Source: Stylophora pistillata
Lineage: Eukaryota
Length of the DNA stretch: 64,000 nt
Reading direction: 5' to 3'
NCBI RefSeq assembly: GCF_002571385.2
Contig: NW_019217899.1
Location: forward strand, 62,001 to 126,000
Below, piece after piece: positions 3,490-63,997 of the stretch. The notes beneath the pieces were generated by a model, which did not search any database, was not told the DNA's origin, and saw only the letters and a program-made list of their open reading frames with translations. How positions within the stretch are numbered: the first letter of the stretch is position 1; the number at the start of each line of letters is the position of its first letter. Position numbers and translations under genes: made by a program.

Positions 3490-4507
3490 GTTAAGAACTT
3501 TCTGCAAGAATTCGCAAAGAAAACGAGAAAAGTTACACTATAATTTTCCTTGAGCTTTCGCTTGAAGTGTGTATTGTTTTAGGTTGTACAAAACATGCAA
3601 ACAAATTTGCATTTGAAAATCTTCATATTTAACCGTTCTAGGCGGTTTCACATAAATTTTACTTTCAGTTATTTTTCAAGTCAAATACAAAACATTTCCT
3701 TTAAAATTTAATTTCACATTCAGAGTCGAAACCACAGAAAATACGGTTATATACCGATCAACTGACACCTGCCAAGTCAGGCAGGAAGCTTGATGAGAAT
3801 TTACGAACATTTACCTGTTGAGTTAAAGTCACGAAAACACTATTCTTCTTACAACAGCGATAAAACTTCTGAAATCTGCACCGCAACTTGGTCTCCTTAC
3901 AATGTACGCTCAAATGTGGGAAGGCCTCCAACTAATTCAGGCGCGATGTTCACTGCCGGTACCAACCTGAAAAGCGACTGTGGCTCGCTGACAGTCTGCG
4001 ATGGAAAACAATTTCGCTCATCCAGAACAAATTACAAGTCAAGCATTTTGTTAATTTTTCTAAAAATATTTGCATTCCTGACTCCTATAATAACATCAAA
4101 AACATTTGCATACCGTGGTGATGGTAGGCTTGTGTTTTGGCTATTTTCGCTTTTATTTGGTCAGATAATACCAAACCGCTCGATCACTGAATATGAGGAA
4201 ATAAGTGAAAAACTGTGCTACTGGCAATTTATCTGTTTGTTATTCCTTCAGTGTGCTTCGACCTTTAATAGTATTATATTAATCACGATGACGATAACAA
4301 TTGCAATATAATGATAATACTAAACACCAAATTTTATCGTGAAGGTGAAACTGAAAAGCTATTTGTTTAACTTGAAAAGGTCAGAAACGCTTCGTCAAAG
4401 GTGTATAGGCTGTATATCTTGCAAAAATATTATAAACTAATCGATGCAAAAGTATTACCAACCTCAGGTATCAGGTAAGCGTTCGAATAAGTATAAACAT
4501 ACATATG

Positions 4508-4817
4508 TCTTATTAACCAAGCGCGAGGGCCGTACTGGGAGAATATCGGCCCGAGGTCTTGACAGTACGGACCGAGCGCAGCGAGGTCCGTACAAAAAAG
4601 ACCGAGGGCCGATATTCTTCCAGTACGGTCTCGAGCAAGCTTGGTTAATAAGAGATTTATTACACGACTGAAGTTCAAAGGGACACAAGTGCGGTATCAT
4701 TCGGGATCATTCGGGACAGTGCCCGGTCCAATACTGAGAGAATATTGACCGGCAATAGAGCATTTTGATTGGGTGATTTTAGTTATTGGCCCTCTGACTT
4801 CCCGAGTCGTGTAATAA
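4508..4817. mobile_element. Non-autonomous double-inverted-repeat (Crypton-like) element, family A copy 1
   Basis: IR1 tcttattaaccaagc...gcttggttaataaga forms a ~145 bp hairpin, followed by IR2 ttattacacgact...agtcgtgtaataa. Near-identical copy at 45610-45920. Confidence 0.8.
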
Positions 4818-9300: not shown

Positions 9301-9348
9301 AACAGGACCCCTGTTGATACCAGTGTTTACTACACTGAAGGGGCTAAC

Positions 9349-9681
9349 CATCCTCGGAGACCCAGGGGCGTTGAGTCGATTTCAAATTAAGGGCAGAGGA
9401 GCCCCTCGGTCGCACTCGTTCTGGCATCTGATTGGTGCCAGGAAATCTTTGTGTTTTTTTGCCCAATCAGAGTGAAGTGTCCTTTAGAGTCCTTTCGTGT
9501 GTTTTAACACGNAAACCTCATTTCACTCTGATTGGGCAGAAAAACACAAAGATTTTCTGGCACCAATCAGATGCCAGAACGAGTGCGACCGTTTGGAACT
9601 AGTCTTGTAAGACAATGTCCCTTAGGGGCTCTTCTGCCCTTAACTTGAAATCGACTCACAGCCCCTGGGTCTCCGAGGATG
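9349..9681. mobile_element. Palindromic MITE, possibly AcademH-type
   Basis: TIR catcctcggagacccagggg / cccctgggtctccgaggatg with long internal inverted repeats. Flanking 9-mers ggggctaac / ggggctatt match at 7 of 9 positions. Confidence 0.8.
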
Positions 9682-10212
9682 GGGGCTATTCTGTATAAAT
9701 ATAAATGTCTACTACATTCAAGGAGAGTGTCACAGTTCCAGTTTGAAGAGCAGCAGTGTGTATGTGGGACAACGATGAACTACATAGAAAAGTCGAACGC
9801 TCGAGAAAACAAGACAGATTTGTTCTACTTCGCTTTCACAGCCCCAAGTTTCAGGATGAAGCGGTTCATAGGCCCATCCTTCTTTGTCACACGAGGGAAA
9901 CTAAGATGGAACAAAAGCCCAGCCTTAATTTTTATCTTGTTTAAGTTACCTGCAAGTGGTGGTTAAAACAAAGAAAGAATATGACATATCAAACGGTCGC
10001 GAAATGTTGATTCATTATTTTGAGTTAGTTGTATTTGTTAAATTTCGTACAGTACATACAGTAAGTTGGCACTGCTCTTGAGTCCTTAGCTAGTGCCACT
10101 TATGATAAAATAAAAAGAGGTTATCGTCTTCTGTCGACTAAATTTCACCGATTCCTTCTTTTCAGGTACGCCATCAGTACAAGCTAACCTGAAAACTGGG
10201 TGGAAGAATCGC

Positions 10213-18000: not shown

Positions 18001-21000
18001 ATCAATTATAGGATTTCTTGGACTTGCAGTTGACTCCACACTTGAATTCCACTCCATAATGTTTTTAAACTTTGCATTTAAAGCAAAGTCTTCAGACTGC
18101 TTGTCCAAAATGGAACTGGAATGTAACTCAGCACTTTCAGATCTCTCTGCATCTAAAGACCTGTTTGAATTGCTTTCCAGGAAGCATTCCCTTATGAATG
18201 TTAAAAACGATTTTGCATCTGAAAAGTTAGACATGTAACCAAATGAGATTCTCACAGAGCCAGTAGGTTTGCCACCAATGAGATCCACATCATCCCCACA
18301 CACATGACCTTCAGACATATTTTTCTTCACTTGCTCACTGGAAAGGCTCAGATACTTCTGACATGCCCCCATGTTACAAAAACAGCCTGTTCTTAGATGA
18401 ACATTGTAAAGACTGGCCATCTTTCCTACCTGTAGAAATAAAGACTCAGGTAGCTACCTAGAAACACAACAGCAATGACACAACCCCAGAAAAGTGCTCA
18501 ATTGGAAATGAAATGCAAATGTTACTAAATTAGCATAATGTTGCATACCTCACTGTAGCCAACAAACTCTCCATTTGCTCTTAGCAGGTTAAAGTTTATT
18601 ACAGGGCCCTGCTTTGTGTTGTCCTTAAAGTCTGTTTCACAGTAAATTTTACACAAAGAGTTTCCAGAAGTGTGTGTCATTGCAGACATCTTTTCATAAA
18701 CATACAAAGCAATGCTATGGGTGTGATTCAACACATCTGTCAGTGATCCTACCAGCTGTTCATACAGTTGAAAGGAATGATGCAAAGCAATGATCTGAAG
18801 AAAGGGAACTGTGCCATCTTCAAACCTGAAAAGTTGAGGAAATTTTTTATCATGAATTACATATACTAGCTTAAATTAAGGTACAACTCAGGGCTCAACA
18901 CTAATGGTAGCCCACTAGCCACAGACTAGTAGAAATTCAGTTTTGGCTATTGGATTTTGGTTTCCACTAGCCAGTTTGGCTGGTAAACGAACTGACACTG
19001 TCGTAGCATCTAAGATGTCACCAGCCACTTGGCTAGTAGGTTGAAAAGTTATTGTTGAACCCTGCAACTAATATATCCAAATAAGGCAACAAACTTGAAA
19101 AAAGAAAGCAATCTTGATATTTTGGTATTTAAATTTGAAAAATCTATGAATGATGAATTTCAAGTTGAAAATTTGGATGCTGCCTTGGTAGTTTCAAACC
19201 CTGGATCTCTTGCCTTCCTTTCAATTCAAACCCATTAGAATATAGAAATGATAGACCTCTCTTTGCAATCCATGGTAAACCCAATTCATTTTTCAGTAAA
19301 CAAGTCAGAAGAATAATTAGGTGGACTGCAATATCCTGATATGACACTGAATTCCCTTATTAACTGATTTACAAGAAAATGTATGGCAGCTGAAAGGGAG
19401 AATTACTAACTACTTCATTACTCAAACTGAGGTAGTAGGGAAAATCTCAAACTGAGGCCTAGCCAAATAAACGTTTGAGATTTTCCCCTATTATGACCAA
19501 ATCGTGGAGATTCATAAGTTATTCATTAAATGGCCTATGAATTGAGGAAAAAAATGTATTGCAGTGGAAGTGGTTAATTAAATTCCGTGATGCATGGGTT
19601 TGCCAATTCATGCAATTACTTAAACCTTTAGCAAAACCCCAAACTGAACTTTGCCAGTGTATCATGTTTTCTGCCCAGAACTCACTTATTTTTGGGGAAA
19701 ATGATCTCTTGCTTGCACAGCCTTAAGAAAGTATTTTGGTAGAGAGGTGCACAACTGATGAGAAAAATTTTGTTTAACTTTCAAGGCAAAACATCAACTG
19801 GAATGCATACAGAAAAGAGCTTCAAAATAGTCCAAACAGATACAGCCTCTTGGTAAAAGAAAGTACAAATGCTTCTAAATGCACTGTTCAGAATATTTCA
19901 GCCTTTGCCTTAGTTTGCTTTTGACATCATATGTTATATTAGATGTAAGATTGAATTTACCTTTCCAGCACAATCTCAAAGGTAACTTTAAACTGTACCT
20001 TCACTTCATTTTCATTCACTTGAATTTTAAAAAAAGAAGAGAGCTGCCACAGTACTTGGGTGACTTTTCTGCACTTCCTAATCTGCATAATCCTGAATCA
20101 GCCCTGTATAATGCCCTGCTTTAATCTTGCTCTTACCCAATCAGAGCATGCCTCTTATTGACCACAAACCAAAGCCATATAGAAAATATACTCAATGTGT
20201 GGTTCCTTAAAATAAAATACTGGACAGGTACTTCTCATGCATGGTACTAGAGTTAAAAGCCACATTCCCTCAAACATCTTTTCTAGAGCACTCCCCCCCA
20301 CCCTTAGGAATTACTAAATTTATTTCTACTTCAATTTGCAGCCAAAATAAATGCCTGTGATTGTGTTTGGAAAATCAAATATTAAGTCTTTCAGTGCAAC
20401 ATTTTACTGCCTTCAAGAGTATTGTGAACGTGATCTAATCCCAAGGACACTTTATTTTTGTTTTGCTCTGCAAAAATATTCTCTAATCTTCTCTAATCTA
20501 AGCTTTAATAAGTGACATTACACAAATTACCTAAAGGATACTGAGACTATAAAAAAACTGTAGTTAAATCAACATTTGTCACATACAACACTCAATGGTC
20601 GGTATATAACTATCAGCTCCTTCCATCTCCTAGGAATTATAATTATAATAATAGCTATTTGTACATGCATGTAAATCTTTCTAGTGTCAAATACAAAAGA
20701 AATAATAGAGAAAAAATGTAATAAACTTACTTTTCAGCAAGATTGTTCTTAAGGATATGAAACCTTTCATCAGAAATTGTTGCTTGCACTGTTCCTCCAC
20801 CATAATAACACTTTTTTAGTAAATGTGAACTACTGTTCTTTACAATAAGAGCACCTAACCCTGTGGGAAAACCAAACATCTTGTAGAAAGAAATGGGAAT
20901 ATAATCTGCTGGACATGATGCTAAGTCCAATGGAGAGGTGCTCACAAATGAAGATGCATCCAAAACAACAAACCAATGGCACCAAGGACTCTTGTTGACT

Positions 21001-22888
21001 AACAATCCCTGTTTAACTTGTGAAATCCATTTAAGAGGATACTTCTTCCCTGAGAAATTACACATTGCAGGAAAAGCAAATAAATTATGGCAAAGGTCAA
21101 CAGTCTCTTGGTCACCATTGCTCCTGGAATTAAATTGTTTTAGATCAGAATCTTCCTCTCTCTCTTCTGTTGAATAGGAGATTTGTTCTTCCAAGTCTTT
21201 TTCATTAACAGAAATAATTTGAGCCCCTTTTGAAGCAGCTATTTCTCTCATACCAACCACTGACGTATGATTCTCTTGAAGGTAACAAAATTTACTTTGA
21301 TGAGCACTTTCTTTACTGATGGCTCCCCTCCAATCAAAGCTTTCGGCCAAAAGTTTCAATGCAGCAGTAGCACCAGAAGTGAAAATCACAGTATGTTGTT
21401 CTGAAGATGTATTGAAATGCTTTAAAATCCTTGTGCGGACTTGCTGAATGACATCACTAGAAAGCTGACTGCTTGGGTTCTTGCTGTGGGGATTTCCATA
21501 CACATTATAACTTAAGTCACTATAAGCATTTGCAATAACACTCTGTGGATACTGTGTTGTTCCAGCATGATCCAAGTATGTAATACCTACAACATATAAA
21601 TTACCTTATTATTAGTTAATTCAAATTATAATGATATAACTTCAGGTTCCCTTAAACACCAGGCACAAGAATATCTTTTTTAAAAGCTCAAGGGGAGAAT
21701 GTATCCACCAGGGATAGAACTCACAAAATCCTATGGTTGGTGTGTCATAAGATAGAAAAATTACAACCTTTCTATTACATTTCCTAACTGCTATTAATGA
21801 ACAATAATCTCATGATCTCAGGTTAATCACACACATCGAGTGATTTAAGCCCCATCTACACGAGCAATTTTTATATGGCAATTTTTATGTGGCAATTTTT
21901 ATCTGCTCGTGTAGATGATGAAAAATGACCAATTTTTATGTGACAACTACTTTTGCCGAAAAGCTGGCGCGTTAGTTTTTATGTAGCAAATAAAAATTGC
22001 CACATAAAAAAATTGTCCGTGTAGATGAGATGCCACATAAAATGTGACAAACATGCCTAAAGCTGCAACACGTCTGGCACGTCTTCTGACTTTCGCCATC
22101 TTGCTTTTATCCTTTCCATGAGCATCTCCGCTGTGCAAAATTATTACTGACGCAAATTAACAACAAATATTTGTCGAGTCATCTACATGGGCAAATAAAA
22201 ATTGCCACATAAAAATTGCTTGTGTAGACAGGGCTTTAGGGATCCTCAACAGGTGTCATATTTCACCTCTACCTCCCCAGAGCAGTAACCCCTCAATAGT
22301 GACCCCTCAGGGGGCCATCATGGAGAGGTTTGATTGTGGAATAATATCTCAATAGATAAACTTAGTACTCTATAAGAAATAAATTATTATTATTACTAAT
22401 TATTATGATTATTAAACTTATAAAAATAGGTTAAAGAACCATTCGGATCCCAGACAGAAATCACCATATTACATGAAGTAAATATCAATGAGGTGCTGCG
22501 CCACATTGATTGATATAAATTGAGCAAGTAGTCAATAGCCGGATGTTCTATGTTATGCAACAGTATAATTTCTACCTGGCCTTCTTAAAACAATATTCAG
22601 GTTCTTCTCTGATAACCGGATACCACTATGTACGTTCAGCTGAATTTGTTTAAGTTCTGACTAAGAAATAACCGCTAAACTTATGTTACGGTGTAGTAGA
22701 CAACAAATGAATTCCCACAAATTAATTGCATGATTTGAATGTCCGCAAACGGCCTCAAAAGAAAACGTATTCATACCTTCCAGTCGTTTAAATTCCTGTT
22801 TTCTTATTTGTTCAATTTTATTTCCATATCCATAATGTTTCCCGAAAGAATGCATAAACTCATCCTCCTCAACCTCTTTCTTCAGCAT
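12055..22888 (-). CDS. MOCOS: Molybdenum cofactor sulfurase (NifS-like PLP domain + MOSC domain), 11 exons
   Basis: Exons 22888-22777, 21586-20731, 18825-18549, 18429-17863, 17451-17289, 16330-16240, 15797-15682, 14779-14631, 12996-12883, 12598-12494, 12147-12055; all GT-AG with consistent phase. Motifs: YLDHAG, FTSGATAAL, SFYKMFGFPTGLGAL (PLP lysine), FEDGT, LRTGCFCN (catalytic Cys), LYPVKSCAAF, RFRANL, CSRC. Confidence 0.95.
13219..13300 (+). mobile_element. Penelope-like pLTR fragment with degenerate minimal hammerhead ribozyme
   Basis: gct-CCGACGA-agggctaacgctc-GAAATGTC-agc (canonical CTGANGA...GAAACGTC). Downstream ggtggccaatttac..tcaact is shared with the copy at ~36493. Confidence 0.65.
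13470..13545. mobile_element. 76-bp MITE with TAG...CTA termini and 9-bp TSD (AcademH-like)
   Basis: TIR tagtct.cctcgcagccgtttttttt / aaaaaaaacggctgcgagggagacta. Perfect TSD gcaagagac at 13461-13469 and 13546-13554. Confidence 0.88.
14125..14225 (+). mobile_element. Degenerate Penelope-like pLTR/hammerhead remnant
   Basis: gacttccgctcaggttgtagaaacatcagtc resembles a minimal hammerhead stem II plus GAAAC(G)TC with a damaged 5' core. Confidence 0.45.
14810..15560 (-). mobile_element. CR1/L2-type LINE 3' fragment in MOCOS intron 7
   Basis: LYRAFILPYLEYCGPI...TLEQRR ORF2 C-terminal signature; 3' tail of atctt repeats at ~14810-14833. Confidence 0.8.
16496..16951. other. Assembly gap (N run) abutting a minisatellite
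   Basis: Run of N. Confidence 1.
16952..17175. repeat. 40-bp minisatellite (at least 5.5 units) in MOCOS intron 5
   Basis: Unit ttacctttaccagttcgcccccacccttcatagttcgtct repeated almost perfectly. Related gttcgcc motifs occur on the left side of the gap (16440-16495). Confidence 0.95.
18889..19064. mobile_element. hAT-like MITE with 5-bp TSD (hAT5-type)
   Basis: TIR cagggctcaaca / tgttgaaccctg; direct repeat caact on both sides. Confidence 0.75.
21848..22235. mobile_element. Harbinger/PIF-type MITE in MOCOS intron 1
   Basis: TIR agccccatctacacgagcaatttttat / ataaaaattgcttgtgtagacagggct; TSD TTA; internal tggcaatttttat repeats. Confidence 0.85.
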
Positions 22889-23414
22889 TGTATGTCTGCC
22901 CCTTCGGCCGAATAAGCACTCACGCCCGATGTCCGAACGTTCACGTAAGGAATGCTCTGTTTTGATGAGAGATGACATACTAACCTGATGACGTCCGCGG
23001 TGCTCATATTTTATTATATCAGCGGTAGTAGGTATTGCTCAGTTTAGTGTTTAGTGTAAAAAGTAACGGTTATTCAGTGGTTCATCGTCCTCCTCCTTCA
23101 GAGGTCGCGGCTAAAAGGGATGACACAAAAGGACCTCATTCAATATTCTAGAAAACATATTTGGAGTGAAAATACAAAAAATGTAAATCAAAGAAAACAT
23201 AAAAATATGTTTTCTATAGAATTTTAATGAGGTCCTTTTGAGTCATCTCTTTTAACCGCGACCTCCTTTAGAGCAAAATAGTTTCCAGATGGGATGGAAA
23301 CTCGATTTTTCTCATATTAAAAATTGTTTATTTCACCTCCTTTAGAAGACTCAAAATGGAGACTCTTAGTGGGACACTATATGTCAAATTACATAACATA
23401 TCCGGCCAAGAGTT
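22889..23414. promoter_or_regulatory. Putative bidirectional promoter MOCOS/ZNF830
   Basis: Divergent start codons ~525 bp apart; locally CpG-richer; CRE-like tgacgt at ~22989. Confidence 0.65.
23101..23265. mobile_element. Palindromic MITE inside the bidirectional promoter
   Basis: 40-bp TIR gaggtcgcggctaaaagggatgacacaaaaggacctcatt versus aatgaggtccttttgagtcatctcttttaaccgcgacctc (3 mismatches). TSD unclear. Confidence 0.8.
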
Positions 23415-26400
23415 ATGATGGCTACCAGAAAGGTTGACGTAAGGTTAATCAAAAGAAAGAGGGAAGCAAAAAAGACAGTTGATTCCCCACTGGCTAGGTA
23501 CTATATTCTGGAACTTAAAATGTTTGGAGCACTATTATTGTTGGGTTAGAAGTTTGCCCTACATTCCCTTACGTTTATCAGGTACAATAGTGCTGGCCAG
23601 CTATCTTGTGTGGTATGCGACATAAACATAAAGAACGAATTTCTGTGGACCTCACATGTCCTTGGTAAAAAGCACAAAGAGGTAAATTAAAGGGTAAAGA
23701 TCCACTAAAGAGAGTAACAGTGCATAACATTTTCATTTAATTATCGTCAGGTCTTAGGTTCCATGCTCAACTTGTAACCAAGAATTTTTTTATTTGGCAG
23801 AACTTGGCAAACCTAAAAGGGAAATCCAAAGCAAACTTATCAGTTACAGAGGTGCAAAAGCCAGTTAAAGTAAGTGGCAACTTAGCTTGTTATGTTCTAT
23901 TTTGAACACTGACCCTTAGTTACCATAAGAGGTAAAGAAGAACGACGGAAATTAAATGGTCTATTTTTGCAGACCCTATGTACTGTACATGCGCAGGAGA
24001 GACGTAATGACTAAAAGAAGGAATGACCTAAAACCACCTAGAACCACCCACAACCACCATCTAAAACCACCTAAAACCACCTACAACCACCTTCAGAATA
24101 CTATTGTGTGACAATTTGAGACAATGTAAGTGCACACCATTACTTAATAAGGTCACGTATCACAGCGCCGCGAGACTATGAGACGTATTTGGCCTGCCAA
24201 CACCTTTAACTCATTGATATTTTAGACAGCAAAACAAAAAGGCCATCACACTATCATTGGGCTAGAAAGTCATGAAAGCCACGCCACAATTTTTCGTAAC
24301 ACTCACAATAGCTCCCTGTAGGTCATTGTAGCTCATTGTAGGTCATTGTAGCTCATTGTAGGTCATTGTAAATCATTGTGGATCATTTTAGGTCAGTCCT
24401 TGTTTCCACGGTAGCTCATTGTAGGTCATTTCTTGTTTTAGTAACTACGTGTAAAAAATTTTCTTGGTGTTTTTCCCTGGTCATGACATGCGACAACATT
24501 TCTGGTGTGCATTTAAATTGTCACAAATTGCCACACAATAGTATTCTGAAGGTGGTTGTAGGTGGTTTTAGATGGTTGTAGGTGGTGGTTGTGGGTGGTT
24601 TTAGATGGTTGTAGGTGGTTTTAGGTGGTTTTAGGTCATTCCTTCTTTTAGTAACTATGGCAGGAGAGACTGGGCTAAATGTGAAATCCAGTGGTAGGTC
24701 TTTGGTGTTGAGCTGGATAGAGGCATTGAGAGTTGAAAGTCAGTTCTCCAGGATTTAAAAACCTGGGTGAAGTTCTGGTGGTCCTGGTTCGAGCACATAC
24801 ATGTACATTGCTCATCGAGAAAGACAGTAATTGTTGACTAAGGTGAGGTCTCGGAACACATGTTGGAGGGAAGGCTGGTAGTTGCCAACTATATCATGTT
24901 TTAGAATGTGCCGGGGTTGACAAGGTAGTCTTCTCAAAATATACTTTTTATTTTTTGGAAAGGTTTAATATAAGTAACAAGGAACTTCGAATATGGCTGT
25001 GAATGCCTGTGTCCAAGCTGATAACATCTAGTCCTTCATATGTACACAATTAAGTAAGAAAAAATTACAAATAGAACATACCAAATAGTGGTTGACTCTA
25101 AATATTGGTGTTTCTCTACTGAATAAGTTTTCTTCCATAATTTGTTTGTGAAATAGAAAGAAAAAGAGAGAATTTTAAACAACCATGGTCTTGGTTTCCT
25201 GGTGTAAACAAAACCATGCACAGCTATCATGTTGATGGTAATTTTTATGTATAAACCAGTTGTTTCCTGTGTGCTGTAAGAAATTACTGAGCAACTTAAT
25301 GTGTTGGGTTGGGATTTTAAATCTAATTTGGGGGTTGGGATTAAGGGTGTAAATATCTTGGAGGGGACTTAGAGTCCTATTGCATTTACACCCACCTTCG
25401 GGTGAATCATAAATAAAAAAAAAAACTTTGTTCCACTTTTAATGTTTCCTTTTGAGATATACTTTGATGAACAAATTTTCAGCAGGTTGAAACAAATGAT
25501 GAAGCTCCAAATAAAAAAATTAAAGGTCAGTTCATTAAAATTTTTCAGAGAATCACCTTAATCAAGATTTAACATTTAAAGCACATCTGAGTTTTGATTC
25601 ATGTACTATAATTTCCAGCTGTTTATTCACAGGTTATCTGTTGATTTTGCATTAAACATGCATCACTACAGGTAATAGGGAGGTGGGGGTTATGTAACAG
25701 TTTTAAAATCTACTGGTGGTTGAACTGAAAAAAATTCTCACCTACATGTACCTGCATTTCCACCTCTCAACTGTGTTTTATTGTTATAGTATTAAGAGTG
25801 CCACAAAGTGGCATGAAAACATGATGCTGACTCAAGGTTACTTTATTCATAATTAGTTGTGTAACGAACAAATTTTTATCGCTACGTGTAAACAAAACCT
25901 TGATTTCCAGTTAACACTAACAGAATTTTCCTGTTATAAGGGACTTGTTAGGCCCAGTAGAACTGGAGATATCAATTTTTTTTTAAAAATTGGCCAATAG
26001 TAGTTTGAAAGCCCGGTCGGAAATTATGGTAACCATTTGGAATACTCATCACTCCATGACATCAGCGTTATTCATGGTTAACACAACTTTCATTTACTGA
26101 TAGATCTTGAGTTTTGTCAGCGAACAACTTTTTCGTTATCTCGGATATTTCAAGACATCAATCATGTATATGTTGTAGTTCAATTTTATACTTGGTTCAA
26201 ATTTTATTTACCTTTGTTCTCGGCCATGTCAGTGTATGCATGATAATGAGTTTGAAACAAAGGAAAATAAAATTTGAACTAAGGATAAAATTGAACTACA
26301 AGATATACAACATAACAACCATGTTACGCTTGATACAGACCAGACAGTGTAACTAACGTGGTGCAAAGTAGTTGCTACACCATTCATTTTAAGTTAGTTA

Positions 26401-27501: not shown

Positions 27502-30500
27502 GGGTGGGTATACAGCGCTTTGGACAATTAGTGGATTTTAGCGCTATATAAATACAATTATTATTATTATTATTATTAATAAAGTATGTATGTATGTATG
27601 TAATTATAACGAACTGGTTCAAGACTTCAGAGGTAGTTCATCGTTTTATTACGACAGGTCTGTTTCGTATAGTCGAAAATGACCACACTCATGAGGTAAT
27701 TTCAACGTATGTATGTATGCATGTGTGTGTGTGTGCGTGCGTGCGTGCGTGTATGTATGTATGTATGTATGTATGTATGTATAGGCAAACACGTGGCTAT
27801 TGAATGGGCCAACCTAAATGTTTTGAGCAAGGATGGTCAAAAAAGTTAAACCTCTGCTAGAAGTACCAGCAAAGGCAGTCGTATTGTAGGACATAAGCTG
27901 AAAAATTCTTGTATTGCTCTTGGCCTCAGTTTTACGGTGAAATTTTTATTCAACTATGAAAGGCTTTTCTGTCAACAGATTAATAATTAATTACTAAAAA
28001 TGTAAAGGAAACAATTGATAATTTTTAAAATTTACTACGGCTGTATTCAATTACTGTCAAACGTCAACCACATTTGACAGTAATTCTGGTATTGTCTTAG
28101 CTATACAGACAGTTTAGAAGAAAAAAAGGATGAGACTTCCACAGATAACCAATCACATTTGCCTTCAGGTAAGAAATTGTTTCCAGCTATCATGTGGTTG
28201 TATTTTTACCGAACAAGATTTTACACAGTCAACTGGCTACATAATACGAAAGGAACTAATTAAAAGTTTTAATTAGCCAGAGAAGAAGCCTGGATTCTGA
28301 CTGAGAACTTGTTTTCACAAGTGGATAGAGTTTGTTGCTGGTTTTCATCATTATCCGTGTAACAGATTGATGCACCTGGTCAGATTACGTGAAGCAGTTA
28401 TAACATGAGGTGGTCTAAAAGCTGGTTACAGTATGCTTGCATTTGTTACTGTAAAGCAAATATGTGTGGTTTAAGGAATGATGTACATTCCTTTTTATCC
28501 TTTTCAGACTTCTTTGATCATGGAATCAAGTCTGGAATGCAAGAGAATATTCCCAGGTGTTAATGGTTATTTTACTTTAGTTAGTAAATTCCTAAATCAT
28601 ATTAACCATATCGCTGTTTTTTTTCATTTTACACAAAGTCATATCAAGTCCATTGTTTCTTAGGAAATTAGTAGAGTACAGATTTTATTTTGGGATTAAG
28701 TGACAATTTATTCATAACACATTTTAACTGAAAAATTTCCATCCAATCTATTGTGCTGTTTATGTACTTATGTCATTTGGTAAGTTATTTTGTCCCTAAT
28801 CACCTGACTTTTGTTGATATTGTTTCCTATGAATGCATGAAAGAGGAGATTCTACAGAAGGCATTCCAGAAGGATTTTTTGATGACCCAAAACTAGATGC
28901 AAAGGTTTGAAAGTCATGCAATTCACTGTGTGTCTAAATTGAAAGTTTAAGTTCCTTCCTATCTTGAAAAGCTTCATGAGTTTTTGGTTATAATCTCTGA
29001 GAATTGAGGTTCTGTGCTAACAGTGCACACTTTAACATTCAAGATAAGGTCATTTGCAGCATAATGACTGAAAGGTAGGACACATAGTCACACTGTTAGT
29101 TTATTAGCACAGTAAAAGGCTACATTGTATGCCCTATATTCCTAATAAAATATACAATTTACTTATCTTTGTTTTTTTTTTTGCATTTAACTTCTTTTTT
29201 GGAACTCAGTTTTTGCTGGACATCTCCAAGTAGGTCCGTAAAGTAGAGTACAAAGATCAGGCTGAGGAGCAATGGGAAAAGTTCCAGAAAGAAATGCAAG
29301 TAGAAAACCAGGTGCTGAAAATATATATATTTTAAAACAAATCAAAGTTTGGATGGTTCAGTGAAGCCATTTTATTGCTCTGTTTTCCATGTTTATTTTA
29401 GTTTTGTTCTACAGTGTTATACCATTGCATAGTTTGTACATTCTATTTCCTTAATATGGTAGTGGTGGATTGGCATAATGGTGTTCAAGTCAGGATAAAG
29501 AATGATCTTTTTTGAAAGCATTACATTACAGGGTAGAAGAATTCAGTGTTGTTACCTTGTTTTTAAGTATTAGTTGTAATGTTTAAAACTTTTTACCAGT
29601 CAGATCAAATCAAATATCATATAGCCCACTGTATATGGCAACATATGGGTTTGATATGGTGCATAGTGTCCCATATCAAAACCATATGAAATCCATGTGG
29701 CCCATAGATTTTCCCATATCAGACCCATACATGGGCCATAAATGTCCCATATCACTCAGTTTGGTAAGGGTGAGTGTATGGGAGCTTAGACCATTGTATT
29801 TTTGTTTTGCATACAATTATTCAGACACCAGTGGTAACCATAAAATTGTGGCAAACAACTGCTTTGTTAAAGCTCCATTCTTTCTTTGGTGGTAGAATGG
29901 TTAGCAAAAATTTCACACTGTTTACCTTATTCATAACTTGAAATGATTAAAAAAAAAACCTGTAGTAAGCTGTGTAAAAAAAATTGACTGCCTTTATAAT
30001 CGCAGCAACTAAGACTTAATATGTGATATCTTTAACATGGTGTAATGGGTGGTTTAATTGTGTTAAAGCTGCAGCTGACATTGTTTTTCACATCTGTGAA
30101 TATGATTTGTTGGGGGACTAGCACAGGTTATCCATGATCCCTGACCCCTTAATAAAGATGGGAAAGTCAGGGTAAGCCAAGAGGACCTACGTAACTTAAA
30201 GGTTGTTGTTCCCTATTACCTTTGCATATATTTTGTCAGGTGTCACAGTCCATTGTTGAAGGAGAAGATGAGGAGTCCAGAGTTAATAGGGAATTATCAG
30301 AACTCAGTGAACAGAGGTAAATGATTATGATGATAGTGATGATCATAATAATAATTATGATTTAAACACCAATGAAATACCAGGTGAGCTTTTGGCAAAA
30401 ATTTGATATCTTCAAAGGTGAAAATAACATGTTGTCTTCTCACATGATAAATTGCACCTTTAATTTACAGCAAAAGTGAAACCGATTGGTTTTTCATTGT

Positions 30501-35100: not shown

Positions 35101-38100
35101 TAAAAAGTTTAAAGAAAAAATATATTCCTTGAAGTTTCATGATGCACCAATCTAACCTGCTAAGATATTTCTCAAAGGAAAAATTTTTGTTTTTTAAATC
35201 GCCCACAATCCTGAAATGATTCCTGCCTTCCCTATGAACTACAAGCCAGAAATCACAAAAAGGAAAGAACTCAACTGTGTATTGAGTTCAAATGTCAAAC
35301 AACTAATTATAAGATACTCCAAAAAACAAAAACAAACAATAAGTGGGTAACATATTAGATTAAAATTGGGTCAAGATTGGAATTCTATTGTTACTCTCAC
35401 TCTTACCCTCACTCACTCATCGTGACAATAATATGTGGCTATAAATCGCCCCCTTTAGGGGGCAGTAGCCACAAAAATTGGAAAAGCACAGAAAGATGAA
35501 TGGGAGAACTTTTCTTTCAAAGTTCCTCTAATCCCAAGCCTATGAATGCATAATTAACACCAGATAAAGCTAGGAATTCTATTGAGACCTAAAATTGGCA
35601 AACAAAACATACACTATTGCCTCCATTGATAAAGGCTAAAAGACTGTTATGTCCGACATACCCCTGCAGCAGTCAACTTTGTTTTGTATTTTTCTTCAAG
35701 TTCTTTCACTTTCTCAGTGTGATCTTTGACATGTTGTTCCCAGTCTTCTTTAGTGATTGTTTCTGATGAAATACAATTGTTACCAAAGAGCAAATGGTAT
35801 GGATGTTTCAAAATCTTTGATCAATGACAGAAATGACTAGAGTGAACCAGCACTTACCAATGGAGCCAGAATGAGTCATTTCACTCACATGGATGATAAC
35901 AACAGTATCACCTACTTGCTTCATGTTTTTCAAATACCCTAATGAATAATAATTCATTCATTAGTAATGAAGTGTGTCCATTCTCAGTAACTGATAAATA
36001 AAATCCTTTTTAGAAATATAAGGCAAAAAAATTATCTATAAAATTTAAAAACACACAATGAGGATGAACTGTTTTTTTTAATTCATGAGGCCTAAGATAT
36101 TCTGTCTTCATTATCATGAATGGATGATCAAGAACTTTTTCTAACTTGAAGTAGGTTTGTTCCATCTTTGTAATCTTACGTGTAATATAATAGTAATTAC
36201 TTATTATTTAATTGTTTATCATAAAGATTACCAGGTTACACAAACATGGTTATGAATGACTGGAAAACTCTTCTTTACTAAGAAATAACAATGACAAAGT
36301 TTCTTTGAGCCTCCACAAACTATATATTAACTGTAATTTTGGTTTTATCAACTGAGTTGATAATGCAAATTGTTCACCTTAATTAAAGAGTTTCAAAGCT
36401 GACTTTTCAAGCTTTAGCCCTTTGTCAGAGCAAAGGATGAAGGGCTAACACTCAAAATGTCAGCTTTGAAACTCTTTTTAAGAGTTTCAAAGCGGTGGCC
36501 AATTTACATTATCAACTCAGTTGATAAAATCAAAATTACCTTGTTATACTCCCTCACCAAAACAACACCACAGTTTCTTTAGAAACTTATCGCCTTTATG
36601 GTTTTTTCTTTGTGTTTTCGTCCTTCTTTAGATTATTACTATTTTTGTGTGGCTTGCACAAAGTGTGTGGCCACATTATGGCGGGATCAGAATTCATTTA
36701 TTTGTTGAGCGCCTGTTACATGGTCTAGTGTCGTGTGGTGCACTTGTCTGAGTCAGCCATCTTGGTTTAAGTGTGGTGTCGAGTAATTTTTTTTGTGTTA
36801 TAAGTCCAGCTTGTGCAAGAGCTTTTACATTCTTTAAAAGACATTTGACTGTTTGAATCTTCCGTGCGGGTTGCACTACACTGAAAGGAGTTATTGCACT
36901 CTCACAAGCTGACAACTATCGGTTTGATCTTTTGGTGCAGGTTGCACCACTGAGTGTCTGAAGTGTTTGAAAGTGTCTGTCAAGCCACCTGAAAGTGCCA
37001 TAAAGTGAAACAAGTTACATTGTAGTTGCATTCTCCCCTTACCAAACTGGTAAGATGGCAATAATATGGGAGAAATGAGTGCCATATATGGACCATATAT
37101 GGAAAGTAACTAAGTGTATTAAAACAAAATATGGGTTTTATAACAGACCTGAATTAATTCCTAACTTAAGTATGGTTTTAATGTGGAACATAAATTTTAA
37201 AACATCAATAATGTGGGAAAAATATGTGAACTGATTTCCCCATACAATAACCACATTATCCCTCATTCAACATTACTTTTACTGACTCTCGATATAATAA
37301 CCACATTATCTCTTAGTTTGACACATAACTGCAAAATATGGCAGTGATAAAGATAACCATACTAATTCCATATATGGAATTTACATGGCACATAAGAACA
37401 GAAATGTTAATTACATCATTCTTTTTTTGCAACATCACCCCTTGTCCATGTTGGAGTCAAGATATGATTTTGCCAGATTTTCAATTTTGAACCCTTGTTT
37501 GCACTGAATAGTCATAATGATGGCAAATAAATGCAAGTTATCGCATGTCAATGAATAAAAACTATACAGTTGGACACAATAAAGCCTCCAGGTCAAATTG
37601 TAAATCTTGTTGGGTTAAAGATTATTAGCAGTGTTAATGTAATGTTACTTCAGAGTATTACTCAACATATAATTCATCAAAATATTGCTTGTATTCTGAT
37701 CTTGTTCTGTACCTACCTCTTTTCCCTAAATTCTTCCATTTGCATCCCCATATCCACCTTCCTCTCCTACATTTTTCTGTGTTCTTAATTAAAAAATACA
37801 GCCCCACAAAACCCAAATACATTAATGCTGGTAAACGTTGTTCTCTCAACAAACTGTAAACAGAATTTTGTGCTCTAATGGACTGTACAGAAACTTACCC
37901 TCAGCATTTTATTACTTTACGTGCGTGTACTGCCAATATTTAAGTCAATTCACACCAAATAAAGCTTCCAATGGCTTCTAATGTAGATTACATCATTTCC
38001 TGAAGATTTCGGCCCTTCTGGAAAGTTTTATCCACATGCATGTACTGGTACACAAAGTGCCAAAAATATCCATATGAAATGCTTCCTTAGAGTTAATTTC

Positions 38101-43063: not shown

Positions 43064-45332
43064 TCAGAGGGTGGCCAATATTCGTGAATATGACACAAGA
43101 AAGCCTAGGAAGCCTTGTCCAGCACCCCAGAGAAATGCAGCATACCTTGGCATGGTGAAATGAGCTGTTCGATATACTGCCCCTATTGTGGCACCTGAAA
43201 TGGAAGACAGGGGTGGTTTTCTGTGGTTTTCACATGCGTGCAAAACTATCGCTTCCTATCAAAGTTAAGACAAACTTTTTGAATTTTTCAAAACTTAGTC
43301 AGTGGTTATATATGATAAAAGGCTTATTGAATAAATTTATTCAGGCTGAATGGGAAAATATTTGGCTCTCATTAATGATGTACAAACCAAGTGGACCTTG
43401 AGCCAAATATTTTCACATTTGGCCCTCTTGCTGAGTCAATAAGTACATAGTTTGTATAAGGAAGAGGTAATGTGTACTTATCAAAAAGTGTCTAAGGCAA
43501 CTAGGTACACTATAAAGCAGTTTCAATTTGTGACTAATGGAGGAAGACTCTAAGAAACCACTATACTTTACATCAAACTTGTTTTAACTTTATGTTCAAC
43601 AAACTTGAGATAAAGTTTATATCCTGAAGTTTTAATAACATAGCAAAAAATAAGAACCAGATGGTTTGATTAATGGTTTAAATTTGCTGACCCATTTGCT
43701 GCTTCAATCTACTAACTAACTACTACTAACTGCTTTCATTTGTGCTTTAATCTACTGACTAACACAGGTATTTTTGATAGCATATTTAAACTTTTTCTAT
43801 TCATCAAGCTTTTAATTAGAAAATTTTGGAGATTATGCAAAAATTAAAACTCACTTGTTACTATTCCTCCAGTGATTGGATAAAGAAATCCAATGAATAT
43901 TATAAGGAGAGGAAAAAACATGCCTCGTGAATGTTGCCTCAGAGCAAAGAAAGCAACAGCAGCTGAAATACAATGGATGAACACTGATGTTGCCAGACAC
44001 CAAAGAAAAATCTGATACCACATTTCTGTGAAAGAAATAAAAACCAATGAACACACAGCCTACAAAAAATTTTTGACTCTATTTGTCACAATTTTATACA
44101 AATGGTTGTGATGCTTTATGAAGAGCCCCTGGTTGTTCCACAGAGGCTCAGACATTTAGACATTTACTCCCTTTAACGCCAGTAAATAATCCCACAACTA
44201 CAGGTGTACAAGAATAACATGACTTTGATTACTCACACAGTGAATGAGATAATGGATGAAAATAAAATGAAACCAAAACTGTTTAAAAAACCAGCAAAGT
44301 AGTTTCCCAAAATGTCAAACTCCCAAAAACCTACTAATTATGCCTTGACAACCCCTGGCCTTGTGATGTCTTTTTAAGTTCCCTTGGGTTTCATTTTGAG
44401 CAATATGAAAAGATTTAGTGACTTGTTTAAAAGAAGTCCTGCATACTTTGTTGTGCATTCTCTGTTATCGGAGGTCAGATTGCTATACACATTGTAAATG
44501 TCGTGTTCTGGGCAAAGAGTAGTATTCTTTTAAAATAAACTAAAAAAGTTAAATAAAGGGAAGATGAAGCATTGTTTCATTCACAAGGAAAAAATTAAAC
44601 ACAGTGAGGTTACTTGGTTACATGTGTAAGTGTGAAAGATGTCCAATGACACATTTCTGGGTTATAGTGTGAAAACACATGAGACATTGGTTTAAGTGAA
44701 AAACATATGGTATACAGTTGCTGTTCTTCATACAGACTTCTTTCTAGTACAAATACACCAGTCCTGTACCTCTCACTTACCGCCAGTTCTTTTATGTCTC
44801 AACAAAATTCTGACATTTTAACATAAAAAAAGAAAAGAACCAATCATACAGGCCTAGCTTCCCCAGATGAGCAATGGACACCTTATCATGGCCCTACGGA
44901 ATACACAAGTATAAACAACCTCTTCATTACTCACATCGACATTATATAGTAATTATAAATTGTGTCAGTAATACATTTTTCCTGCACTGCACCCTTTTAA
45001 AACGAATTCCTGTGGAGGTTTAGTATCGCATAGTAGTTTTCTCAGTGGTCAACTGCAGACGTAAACATTTAGCTGCAAGCTTATGTGTGAGGTTGCTTTC
45101 TTCGCTGCTTGATCAATTATTCGAAACCATCAGGGGAAATAGTAACAACAGCGCTTTTCACTGCCATCAAAAGTTAAACAGGATTCGATGGGCTTGAGTC
45201 TTAATCAACAGCCGAATTAACCACAGCCTGTTTGAAGTAAGCTTTCACGATTTAAACACCAAGCCTTAATTAAAATTGGCGATTCATCATCCACTCACCA
45301 CCGAAAAAATACAGATTCTTTTGCACATCCAT
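43064..45332 (-). CDS. TMEM170A: Transmembrane protein 170 (ER morphology), 3 exons
   Basis: Exons 45332-45299, 44025-43855, 43194-43064. Translation ...EMWYQIFLWCL...ALRQH...PITGGIVTSATIGAVYRTA...GAGQ...SYSRILATL matches TMEM170 family motifs (EMWY, TSAAIAGVYR, RILATL). Exon 1 is inferred from ATG, donor and phase match. Confidence 0.9.
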
Positions 45333-45609
45333 GCCTCTGTATTTACTCTTCAAGCACTAGAGACTGCTACAACTTTCCTTTTCTCGGGGAGCCTTTAGAT
45401 CAGCCTCTTTCCTACTTTAGAGCACCAGAAGTTTTCAAATATGAACCCCCCCAGCGTACGGCTACCGCCGAGTTCCGCCATATTCTTCATCGCTGTGAAG
45501 CCGACAGAGCTGAATAATGAAATGCTACGTCAGAGCGTATGCGGTCAACAACGCGGGCTCAAGTGTCCTCAGTCGAAAATTTCACGAAAGTAACAAGGGA
45601 ATAAATATA

Positions 45610-45920
45610 TCTTATTAACCAAGCCCGAGGGCCGTACTGAGAGAATATCGGCCCGAAGTCTTGACAGTACGGAATGAGCGCAGCGAGGTCCGTACAAAAA
45701 AGACCGAGGGCCGATATTCTTCCAGTACGGTCCCGAGCAAGCTTGGTTAATAAGAGATTTATTATACGACTGAAGTTCATAGGGACACAAGTGCGGTATC
45801 ATTCGGGACCATTCGGGACAGTGCCCGGTCCAATACTTAGAGAATATTGGACCGGCAATAGAGCATTTAGATTGGTTTATTTTAGTTATTGGCCCTCTGA
45901 CTGCCCGAGTCGTGTAATAA
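45610..45920. mobile_element. Double-inverted-repeat (Crypton-like) element, family A copy 2
   Basis: Near-identical to 4508-4817; flanked by the 14-bp direct repeat aataaatatatctt. Confidence 0.85.
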
Positions 45921-45926
45921 ATATAT

Positions 45927-46460
45927 CTTGTTAGACGTTTTGTTGTGTAGTATCGCTGAGTATTTTTACGAGTTTTGCCCGTAGGGCGAGTCAAAGTACA
46001 AATAACGAGTAAAAATACTCAGCGATACTACACAACAAAATGTCTAATAAGTTATTTATTATCCAACACGCCAAACTGTTATTTCAGTGCGGGCGAATTT
46101 CGCGGATATTTATTTACGGGGAGTGCATGACAGAAGTATGCGAAGAGGAACGTTGTCGTGTAATGTTGCTGTTTCCATTTTCTTCAATAAATGAAGAAAT
46201 TTCCAGGTCGTCTACCTGTTTTTCTTCGTTCGATTCATCTAATAAACTTGGATGTATATTTGCCAGCCATTCTGACTCTTCGTCGTCGGAAATATGATTC
46301 AAATTGTCCGCCATTTCTTTTTTCGTAACTACAATACAATTCTTCGCTTCCGCGATGCGAGAAAACCTGTTTGACCGGTACTGTAGAGTACAAATACCGC
46401 GTGATATTTGTACTCGTCTATGGCGTTATTTGTACTCTACGAAGTGTAGTTGGATAATAA
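45927..46460 (-). mobile_element. Double-inverted-repeat (Crypton-like) element, family B, with a truncated ORF
   Basis: IR1 cttgttagacgttttgttgtgtagtatcgctgagtatttttac / gtaaaaatactcagcgatactacacaacaaaatgtctaataag; IR2 ttattatccaac / gttggataataa. ORF 46314-46114 (VDDLEISSFIEENGNSNITR) resembles the N-terminus of the remnant at 63574. Confidence 0.75.
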
Positions 46461-46940
46461 TAAGTGAGAATAATAAGTGGGAAAATAATAAGGGCTCACT
46501 TTTAAAACCGAGGAACTCTGTTTTCGTCGAAGGCATTTTCCTATTTCCACAGTTTTTAAGGAGAAAATTGATATTTGAAAATTTTTAGGTGGTTTACCAA
46601 GTTTTTGGAGGTTTTCTGTAAAAGAAAAACGGCAAGGAAAACGACGCCTCGAAGCAAAAGAATAGGAAATCAACCATGCGAACGACTCAAAATCTGTGTT
46701 TCCGCGCCAAAACCTGGCGCATGCGTATACGTTATTCAGCTCTGTCTGTGAAACCTGTATTATTTTGCTCTGCGGAAAGACGTCATCTTCTCCCATCATG
46801 TCGTATACTTCTCATCGTAATATATCCAATCAGATTTTGCCTTTTTTACTGCGCTTGTTGAAAGTGCTTCAAAGGGCCAGGTACCGGGCTAAAGCAAATG
46901 GAGTCTTGGATGGTGTCCTTCTAAGTTTGTTTTTGATGAA

Positions 46941-61060: not shown

Positions 61061-63064
61061 ATGTCGTTTTGGGATACTTTTCAGAACTTAGAATCACATG
61101 TTAAAACCAAGATCCTTACAGAGCTTCAAACCATTTTTGGCGCATCGTTTGAATTCGAGGCGTGCATTTACTTGATGCAGTGGTTGGTTCATCAGTCATG
61201 GTGAGTTGAAAGACGTGACGTGAAATTCTGCTGTTTCTACTGTCTGTGCTTTTTTTTTGTATCCAAAAATCCAAAGAGTTACCTTCCCCCCTCCTGCTCA
61301 CCATATGACGTTTCCAAATCTTCGTCTCACTTGGGATTTTTTCAATAATGATTTTCTGGGAACTCTTTTTCATTTTCTTCGTTTAGAAACAGAGATTTCC
61401 CAATTTTTTCACTTCCCCTGCTTTATCTTAAAAAAGGATACAACACTGATTAGCATTGTGGCCAGGAACAGGGAATATCTTACTTCCATAAAAAAAATAT
61501 AGATAAAATATATGTCTATTTATAAACAAACGAGCAAACGAGCAAACAAGCAAACACAGTATGAAATGATTAAAATAAACAAACAAACTAAAAAATCAAA
61601 ACAGAAAGGAGGGCTTTTAAAGCCATAACCAACATGATATTCATAAATTTAGGGTTGCAGTAAACCTCAAAAGAAAACAAGGTGTGCATCTCCATGACAC
61701 CTCACATGCTTATATGGACTTTGAAGGGTTGTATTGCATGTTGTTTGACTGTGTTTTTACAGAAACGACCCTTCTTCATCAACCTGACTAGCTTTGGTTC
61801 CTTATTATTTGTTTTACAGAAAATTTAAGCCTGTCTCTTTTTTTGTCTCCAGGGATGAGGCAATTGACCCAAATCTTCAGGGATCAAGTGTGATAAAAGC
61901 TAAACAGTTAATGGATGCCACCATATCCCACCTGAATCTACATAAACAAAAGGTAGGCATACAGTACAGCAAGAAATAATCAGCAATGAACCTTGAGTCT
62001 TGTTGTTCTGTACATTTGCTTTGACAATAATTTAAGCAACATTTCTGTTGCTTTACAGCTAGAAGGTCTGGCTGCATCTATGAATGACTTCCACAACATG
62101 CTTTTAGCAAAGAAAGTAGAGGAAGTGATTCATAAAATAGAGGTAAGTTGATAGTGAGTAACCAATAAAGTGTAATTTTATATCCAGTGATCCCTATCTT
62201 TTGTTTATATGCTCATTTTGATTTCTCCTTTTATACTTATATTTTGACAACTTCATAACACATTTGACCTGTTTATGATGTCGCCAACAATCAATGGGTT
62301 CAATCATTTCTTTTTAAGTAAGAATAATGTATGCAAAATCTGAGATCTTCATTGAGTGTTTGAGCCCCTAATACACTTAGTGTTATGCACCTGTAGGAGG
62401 TTTAGCAGCCAATATTTTGCGGTATTGCCATCAAAAACAGCAGTTAGGTTATATTAATCCTTACACTATTATGGGGCTGCTGCTGTCTCTCATGAACCCT
62501 GTGGAACTATACACCATTACATTTTCATTGTTAGGAGAGCTATGGTAATGATCCAGTGAAGCTTGCTCAGTATTTCTATGGGGTTGTTTCTAAACTGAGA
62601 GAATTGGTCCAGAATGCAGTCTCTGTAAGTATATATAGTAACTTGGAGTAATGAACAGTGCATGCAAATTCTGCAGCAAGTGTTTTGAAGACTCACTTGC
62701 TCATGTACAGTTGCTTGCGACTGTAGTTTAGCAATTTCAGGAAATGCAGTCTATTCTTTGCCAATTGTATTTGTGATAACAAATGCACTGACACACAGTA
62801 GGAAAGAAGTGTGCTTGGGTTTGTTTGTTTGTAGTGAACTTGGATTCATCTTTCAGTACCTTGGGAGATTGATCTCTGTTTCAATTGGTTGTGTTACCTA
62901 TTTTCCATTGATTTTTCTTTTTCATCGTAAGAGAATTAATTTGTTTGGGTAATTTGTATAGGTAATCGCATGGGGCCAAGTAAAATTAAGGATTAATAAT
63001 TATCACGCGTGTTTTCAAAAATTGCTGAAATTGCCTGAGTCGTGAAGCGATGAGGGCAATTTCA

Positions 63065-63095
<31 letters not shown>

Positions 63096-63997
63096 GTTAA
63101 TTTTACGAGGACCCATTGCGATTACTTGTTAATGAAATTGATGGGAAAACTACTGAATTTCTGAATGCGCTCTTCAGTAATCAGTCATAGGAAGCCATTT
63201 AAAGTTAACAGAGAATCAATGGCCACAAACGTACGAATGAGCTGAATGAAATTTTATTTTGGACAAAGATACCAGAACTTTGGATAGGCTTTTGATTTTA
63301 GATATCTCTCCAGTGATGCCTGCATTACTTTCAGGCAGTCGGGCTTATATTCATCCCCATTTTCTTTTTGTAACTCGGCATAAGACTGCGCCAGTGTTCG
63401 GTCAAGGACATCACTCTCATACTCTTCTAAATTTGCTTGGAAGTTTCTTTCATTCGCCCACTTTTTAAAAACGTTTTTCCAGTACTCTGTGCTTTTCCTC
63501 ATGTTTTCGTTTTCACTCTTGTCTTTTCATTCTTCAATATATTCCTTGTCAACTATCTCAAAATGAGACGCCATTGTTACAGAAAATCTCCAGCAACAAC
63601 TTTTTGATAGCATAAGCTGTTGCTAGGCAACCTGAGTACCACTCATGAGCTAGTAAGTTTGCCCTCTTCTCAAGCAAAAATAAGAAAAAATACCCTCTTC
63701 ATTGAGCGATCAGCATTCAGTAACTTTTCCCTCTATTTTATTAGATACTCAAGAGGGTTGTTATATCAAATAATTATTTTTGTGCTGAGAAATTTTGTTT
63801 ACAACCACGTAATTTCTTTTAGTAAAATCTGTAGGTTTAGGTCTTTAGTGAGGTCTTCTCTGTGTTGTTCAAACCTTAAGATTTCATTGGAATCAACAAC
63901 AACAATAGATATGGAGGACATGGATACTGAAGATAGTGCTCCAGACCCACATGTTGCTCTGCGCAAGCGACTGGATGTTCTTGTCAAGGATAGTCAG
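61061..63997 (+). CDS. STAT: STAT-family transcription factor, N-terminal domain and start of coiled coil (5 exons; gene continues beyond window)
   Basis: Exons 61061-61200, 61853-61952, 62059-62142, 62535-62624, 63881-63997 splice in frame: MSFWDTFQNLESH...FGASFEFEACIYLMQWLVHQSW|DEAIDP...KAKQLMD...ESYGNDPVKLAQYFYGVVSKLRELVQNA. This aligns by eye with STAT N-domains (MSQW..LQQL..; FPMEIRQYLAQWLEKQDW; Y..DP). Confidence 0.8.
62958..63743 (-). mobile_element. Crypton-like (DUF3504/KIAA1958/ZMYM-related tyrosine recombinase) deletion derivative in STAT intron 4
   Basis: Pseudo-ORF 63574-63254: MASHFEIVDKEYIEE*KDKSENENMRKSTEYWKNVFKKW...LDRTLAQSYAELQKENGDEYKPDCLKVMQASLERYLK. 170-bp hairpin at 62958-63129 plus a second IR pair (taatgaaattgatgggaaaactactgaat / attcagtaacttttccctctattttatta). 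Confidence 0.8.

Follow-up and report, generated by a model that had tools for sequence, protein, structure and literature searches.

Three repeat families, here called A, B and C, in a 64,000-nt stretch of the genome of the coral Stylophora pistillata (contig NW_019217899.1, positions 62,001 to 126,000 of the forward strand; hereafter the window, meaning this whole stretch) are non-autonomous Crypton elements of this species. They share an anatomy in which the site that is formed when the two ends of an element are joined (J) recurs inside the element as an inverted copy (J'), with a long hairpin between this copy and the left end. As judged from this anatomy, the conserved design suggests that the elements are recombined as folded single strands, like the cassettes of integrons, a behavior that we found described for no eukaryotic transposon. 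The best explanation overall is that they are CryptonA elements with a J/J' site, folded-strand exchange and replicative resolution, a reading that has an even chance of being right. Families A, B and C and their relatives are thereby DNA transposons of CryptonA type or deletion derivatives of such elements. This class has been described before, whereas its anatomy and the mechanism implied by it appear to be new, and a prior description may exist.

On the + strand of the window, the elements begin with a 6-nt spacer. The left arm comes next; a long imperfect hairpin starts with this arm, and the left-arm complement, a 4-nt spacer and the right-arm complement follow in this order. The body and, lastly, the right arm complete the element. 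J consists of the right arm, the 6-nt spacer and the left arm. J' is located approximately 100 to 190 nt inside the element and represents the reverse complement of the right end plus the left end around the 4-nt spacer; its register is exact in A, B and C as well as in a further family, D, which upholds the proposal of a preliminary description of this DNA that the internal junction repeats the joined ends in inverted orientation. The 6-nt left spacer is ATATAT in A and B and GTATAG in C. The arms beside the spacer in family B, GGATAATAA and CTTATTAGAC, are identical in J and J', and the arms of J and J' in family C agree except at a few positions. These arm pairs are far above chance, with 12-15 nt of perfect or near-perfect match in A and B and ~28 nt in C, and the arm sequences of the A/B group and of C are unrelated. 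The preliminary description had also regarded ATAA-N5-TTAT as the internal junction of most of the elements. This motif is modestly enriched in the window (8 occurrences vs 2.7 expected, with 1 of 100 shuffles reaching 8), and its extended form TAATAA-N5-TTATTA was found 7 times vs 0.7 expected if at most one mismatch was allowed; however, it forms the core of A and B only. Families C, D and E have another core, which reads TTATTA-spacer-GTAATC in C and D.

The same layout was identified in two more S. pistillata families, D (L054, L056 and L058) and E (L060), as well as in the ENA contig L067, the sea anemone Actinostola (L068) and the octocoral Dendronephthya (L090). Comparisons of the layout outside S. 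pistillata covered Anthozoa, and the named matches were almost all cnidarian. An internal region that is complementary to both termini is present in A, B, C and D and in L067, L068 and L090. The octocoral element has a left-end sequence as in the coral C and D families, and its internal register likewise indicates the 2-nt difference between the spacers. In an Actinia contig (L091), a hairpin was found downstream of the open reading frame (ORF), without a clear right-arm pair.

Two copies of family A, one of B and one of C represent the layout in full in the window, and sharp ends and genuine dispersal indicate that all three are real repeat families. The second copy of family A (45605-45920, + strand, 316 nt) carries no ORF; its ATATAT spacer at 45605-45610 is followed by the left arm from 45611, the hairpin extends to 45754 and the right arm ends at 45920. 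Its J' (45741-45771, + strand) comprises the left-arm complement at 45741-45754, the spacer AGAT at 45755-45758 and the right-arm complement at 45759-45771, and the apex of the hairpin reads GA-GC-GCA-GC-GA on the + strand at 45676-45687. The first copy (4503-4817, + strand) is 95% identical to the second copy and has the same layout, with ATAA-N5-TTAT at 4648-4660 within its internal junction. Directly abutting the right end of the second A copy is the family B element (45921-46460, + strand, 540 nt), an internal-deletion derivative of a 2.05-kb autonomous element in L069. Its long hairpin (45927-46051, + strand) has a stem of ~52 nt and the apex GCCC-GTA-GGGC-GA at 45977-45990, and its J' (46042-46067, + strand) includes the left-arm complement at 46042-46051, the spacer TTAT at 46052-46055 and the right-arm complement at 46056-46067, which pairs with the right arm at 46449-46460. 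The family C element (62956-63743, + strand, 788 nt) starts with the left end GTATAGGTAATC, has the apex GA-GTCGT-GAA-GCGAT-GA at 63037-63054 and J' at 63118-63157 (spacer TTGT, 63126-63129), and its right arm ends at 63743. In the genome (assembly size 398 Mb), a first look yielded 1645 candidates for family A, with copies ~97% alike and 20 copies sharing exact ends, and 2581 candidates for family B, with copies ~90% alike; a protein search of the genome with the ORF remnant of family C gave 123 matches. Among the A copies, runs of N directly precede the left end in ~8 of 21 (L070-L073, L077, L080, L082 and L084), and assembly gaps seemingly cluster there.

The coding capacity of the autonomous relatives links these elements to Cryptons. 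Family B maps to the two ends of the L069 element at 79-83% identity. Between these B-matching ends, the sole ORF of this element, on the strand that points toward the hairpin, encodes an intact 486-aa DUF3504 tyrosine recombinase with the motif R..HxxR..H..Y, and the ORF remnant of the window's B element (46114-46314, - strand, also directed toward the hairpin) matches the first 46 aa of this protein (65% identity, E 1e-14). The ORF remnant of family C (63254-63502, - strand) matches the N-terminal QRICH1-type domain of DUF3504/QRICH1 proteins. Its source is a second recombinase lineage with Pfam DUF3504 and QRICH1 domains, which is represented by a longer, 290-aa version in L052 and by a 429-aa relative in L054, an element of ~1.9 kb with one long ORF. 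Both remnants, only one of which had been considered clearly Crypton-like before, are thus confirmed to point toward the hairpin and to be of Crypton type. In an alignment of 23 homologues, H328, R331 and Y363 are invariant and R199 is nearly so; a profile of this alignment matched QRICH1 and integrases among the PDB sequences. The best match of the predicted recombinase structure is Cre (E 1e-9, template modeling score 0.64-0.69), followed by Tn1549 Int, XerA, XerH, the integron integrase IntI4 and lambda Int. Taken together, the Pfam assignment, the alignment and the predicted Cre-like fold confirm an intact R-H-R-Y set of a DUF3504 tyrosine recombinase for the L069 lineage. Defective copies are also present: L054 (4399-5685), with its 429-aa ORF open, has Q at the second catalytic Arg, and L056 keeps this Arg and has an in-frame stop. 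More distant DUF3504 families in the S. pistillata genome have ORFs of 449-637 aa with 28-31% identity.

No second long ORF was found in the autonomous elements L069 and L054, which therefore encode no reverse transcriptase, RNase H or polymerase. Since a second gene is absent, the partners of the window elements carry a tyrosine recombinase and neither a DDE transposase nor an HUH/Rep protein. Helitron/Helentron, HUH and DDE readings were accordingly ruled out by coding capacity, and target duplication is absent as well. In NCBI, the recombinase at L069:2130-3479 is labelled 'uncharacterized protein KIAA1958-like', i.e., as a host gene instead of a transposon gene. A CCAATCA(G/C) box, which may be a promoter element, is located 10-25 nt inside the right arm, upstream of the recombinase start, and is conserved in corals, anemone and octocoral (L056:2535-2550, L060:2760-2775, L067, L068 and L090:2050-2065).

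The ends of the elements could be defined by filled and empty sites. Insertions are site-specific, are not accompanied by target duplication and show one exchange point inside the degenerate pseudo-site AATAN|N6|TTA, at the left edge of the spacer. A family D element splits an E-type hairpin between GCAATTT and GGGCTG, and L060 has this hairpin in uninterrupted form; a C-like element is inserted at the very same point of another E-type hairpin, and both junctions are visible for these two insertions, with 0 nt duplicated and 0 nt deleted. An A copy inside another A copy follows CCAATAC, where the uninterrupted A continues with TTAGAG, which fixes the left junction only. The flank profile consists of AATAN before the element and six variable bases after its right end, with T at +8 in 17/19 A copies and TA at +8/+9 in 21-23 of 29 B copies. 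The element's own spacer is always found at the left junction and never at the right junction; ATATAT also opens the left end of family A in L085. The left flank AATAN of A and B is similar to the AATAA at the tip of the right end, and its variable base is target-derived on the left and always element-derived on the right. A model of two staggered exchanges, with an overlap on either side of the joint, would give mixed outcomes, none of which were seen; this model was rejected because the left spacer always belongs to the element and the right one never does, and because the variable base in front of the joint shows no conversion in any case. As read from the sequences, the asymmetric junctions agree with a single point of exchange and are compatible with one-strand exchange, while the junctions themselves do not show strandedness.

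In a head-to-tail B-B pair in the assembly, the joint is exactly right arm, ATATAT and left arm. The left ends of resident elements are themselves pseudo-sites, and elements are often stacked head to tail. That such a left junction makes a good pseudo-site would explain both these stacks and the abutting of A and B in the window. At L085 (G000:C223:86034-86880), repeated units of A positions 1-230 are joined at the internal pseudo-site CCAATAC|, as if the recombinase had exchanged the left end with that site.

J and J' could also be regarded as two equivalent inverted sites on a circle, between which the recombinase flips the intervening segment to amplify or isomerize the element, as in the yeast 2-micron plasmid. 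Such an FRT-like pair had been proposed in the preliminary description, and the inferred circle does have two inverted copies of the site and a few hairpins are flipped. By comparison, the spacers of J and J' differ in length (6 vs 4 nt) as well as in sequence, the orientation of the loop is the same in 20/20 A copies and 32/33 B copies (52/53 in total), and no isomer with an inverted body was found among ~40 scored full-length B copies. This proposal was therefore not supported, and we consider a 2-micron-like system highly improbable.

Rearranged forms were nevertheless found among the B copies. Fold-back copies (body'-hairpin-body), in which the internal junction and 90-265 nt of the body are present in inverted orientation on both sides of the hairpin, account for 5/27 B left ends (in L002, L004, L023 and L025). 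These fold-backs and the existence of flipped hairpins would suit a mechanism like that of DIRS1, with the internal copy aligning the ends of a linear single-stranded intermediate as a splint, or a hairpin-primed replication of rolling-hairpin type, and J' has the same topology as DIRS1's internal complementary region (PMC13465315). However, the 2-kb element encodes neither reverse transcriptase nor polymerase, and flipped forms are rare in A and B. We regard this alternative as improbable, and it overlaps with the best explanation given above instead of excluding it. The rare rearranged forms look like accidents at long palindromes or products of rare hairpin-mediated copying. At L088:141-400 (G000:C374), the loop of a complete B hairpin is flipped; the 6-nt spacer lies on both sides of this hairpin, and a 5'-truncated normal B follows.

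Folding in silico with DNA parameters indicated that, in A, B and C, the joined ends and J' form one continuous stem, in which 2 bases remain unpaired on the J side next to the joint. The octocoral element and families A to E have the apex motif GA-stem-GNA-stem-GA on the same strand, the one that is antisense to the gene of the recombinase, and this strand folds 0.3-3.8 kcal/mol better than its complement in all five families. In single-stranded DNA, GNA triloops with closing sheared G-A pairs have an unusual stability, which the complement, TC...TNC...TC, does not share. The suggestion that the long hairpin may serve as a folded single-stranded substrate is in keeping with the anatomy, since the continuous stem, the strand-specific apex and the single exchange point are all consistent with it.

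Family A has no gene to terminate, yet it keeps both the hairpin and J'; of the families seen it is the youngest, and it ranks among the most abundant. This speaks against a classical Crypton route, in which a double-stranded circle would integrate via J and in which J' and the hairpin would be accessories, such as a second binding site for assembly of the recombinase, a region of termination or polyadenylation for the recombinase gene, or a safeguard against read-through. Such roles could be suggested by the position of J' and the hairpin directly downstream of the ORF and by AATAAA on the sense strand within J' of A and B, and the tandem junctions are compatible with a double-stranded circle, which is the form assumed in the circle model of Goodwin, the accepted model as summarized in PMC3212892. 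On the other hand, the pairing of the right arm covaries across families that are unrelated in sequence, and a pure protein-binding site would not need 12-29 nt. In addition, the junctions are without a footprint of staggered exchange, and the apex motif is strand-specific and located on the antisense strand. Taking these observations into consideration, the classical route is possible and rather unlikely.

The mechanism that we propose for folded-strand exchange would begin with the folding of one strand, such that the pairing of J with J' creates a double-stranded site for the recombinase, with 2 nt bulging out at the joint. The recombinase would exchange the folded strand with a double-stranded pseudo-site target, and replication would resolve the product, as in integron attC x attI recombination and in CTX-phage attP(+) integration. 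In an integrated copy, J' could pair with both ends at once and act as a splint that holds the ends together, and one strand might then be cut out and closed as a circle, with the donor copy remaining in place. Retention of the donor after such one-strand copy-out would explain the thousands of copies of these families. This mechanism, which we infer from the anatomy, stands at about even odds.

A number of observations weigh against it. The two strands differ little in folding energy, and sheared G-A pairs are not scored by the energy model. A clean apex motif is lacking in the Actinostola copy, and the apex is flipped relative to the body in 3/12 listed C copies. These are L032, L035 and L036, with a TTC loop in place of GAA; the latter two have the same flanks and possibly represent a duplication of one locus. 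Furthermore, the 6-nt vs 4-nt difference between the spacers is backed by empty sites for A and D only, and that in B, C and the octocoral was inferred from the alignment of copies. No circle, single-stranded form or strand bias was observed in the sequencing data, which consisted of assembled contigs from four runs. The right-to-left joint of B does appear in all four of these runs; since tandem copies with the same joint are present in the assembly, it is not decisive. A double-stranded circle with a Holliday junction that is resolved by replication could also give a one-point exchange, and the elements encode no enzyme for making single strands.

Other parts of the window, which has a GC content of 35-40% over most of its length, represent this class less clearly. 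The shared layout that had been described in advance was confirmed in the four full elements, with the boundaries of A, B and C refined to those given above; the decayed pieces are weaker, and the layout was not confirmed in any of the four. At 800-909 (+ strand), a truncated copy of a young family represents a piece of another hairpin-bearing high-copy family and is a putative class member; a first look gave 877 candidates for this family, many of them 99% identical, and elsewhere it forms tandem arrays with a 297-bp period (e.g., in contigs C9, C17 and C62). An old diverged repeat at 43310-43450 (+ strand), which has a hairpin with 25-nt arms and ATAA-N5-TTAT beside it, is likewise a putative member, and ~30355-30500 also belongs to an old diverged repeat. 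The piece at ~19400-19530 has just one other hit in the genome, which is weak. An automatic scan for the layout around long window hairpins was uninformative for 9348-9682, 26165-26309, 23101-23265, 36333-36539 and 13469-13546, which were not counted as members. These five regions and 21868-22010 contain additional long inverted repeats or palindromes with arms of 26-132 nt, for which the Crypton layout was not demonstrable. The flanks of the A-B pair (45488-45600 and 46456-46700) also have a very high summed contig depth in the four runs, which indicates other repeats, and a 13-nt unit (GATAATAATAAGT-like) is present in three copies after the right end of B.

Cryptons are the least understood order of eukaryotic DNA transposons, and the ends, target and intermediate of the animal elements are called undefined in the papers that could be searched. 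An internal inverted copy, a hairpin or a folded substrate was not found described for Cryptons in the open full-text literature, subscription journals and Repbase Reports being outside the reach of this search. Our analysis defines the ends exactly and adds a site of recombination, a pseudo-site as the target and a conserved fold, common to corals, a sea anemone and an octocoral. It is a tentative proposal, with somewhat less than an even chance, that the CryptonA elements of Anthozoa are the first eukaryotic transposons to be moved as a folded single strand by a tyrosine recombinase, with J' providing the second strand and the splint, one-strand integration as in integrons and CTX phage, and copy-out that leaves the donor in place. 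If true, animals would also use a type of recombination that has so far been known from bacteria only (integrons, CTX phage and SE elements). Because family A, with copies ~97% alike, looks recently active, the idea is testable in living coral. The DUF3504 recombinases gave rise to the animal genes QRICH1, the ZMYM genes and KIAA1958, and the form of DNA that the ancestral enzyme handled is therefore relevant to these genes. Moreover, the anatomy ties Cryptons to the internal complementary region of DIRS1 and bears on the kinship of these two recombinase-bearing classes.

Among known systems, the coral elements can be compared with CryptonA elements, with which they share a single gene for a DUF3504-type tyrosine recombinase with a QRICH1-type N-terminal domain, the absence of reverse transcriptase and of terminal inverted or long direct repeats, and an excess of non-autonomous derivatives over autonomous copies. 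Kojima and Jurka found no terminal repeats in animal Cryptons in 2011 (PMC3212892), the repeats of CryptonA were reported to be variable or poorly conserved in the 2026 study of Glomhopper (PMC13465315), and a curation guide from 2022 names a short direct repeat as the sole distinguishing feature of Cryptons. By comparison, the ends of the coral elements are exactly defined and pair with the inverted copy of their own junction, which lies inside the element next to a long hairpin, and the target is a pseudo-site, apparently without the usual short (4-6 bp) direct repeats. DIRS1 also has a tyrosine recombinase and an internal segment that is complementary to both tips and adjoins one end (PMC13465315), for which a role as a splint has been proposed. 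However, the coral elements carry no genes for reverse transcriptase, RNase H or methyltransferase, and their long inverted repeats, instead of flanking the coding region, make up a local hairpin that separates the internal copy from one end. The yeast 2-micron FLP/FRT system resembles the coral elements in having two inverted recombinase sites on one circle, which is putative in the corals, while the coral sites are non-equivalent, with spacers of 6 and 4 nt, and their isomers are not balanced.

The bacterial systems offer parallels for the proposed strand exchange. The attC sites of integrons and attP(+) of CTX phage, which are folded single-strand substrates of tyrosine recombinases, have imperfect inverted half-sites ~100 nt apart that fold into a recombinase site with central unpaired bases, as the coral sites do in silico; in both cases, the structure is conserved and the sequence is not, and the coral junctions similarly fit one exchange point without target duplication. 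The coral elements differ from these systems in their eukaryotic host, in having a Cre-like DUF3504 enzyme in place of IntI or XerCD, and in carrying their own recombinase; their single-stranded form is putative. The bacterial SE elements are tyrosine-recombinase elements that use just one strand to form a circle, so that the donor copy stays where it was, a behavior that we propose for the coral elements as well; the SE elements are larger (7 kb), have four genes including two recombinases, and no attC-like inverted repeat structure was detected in their sites.
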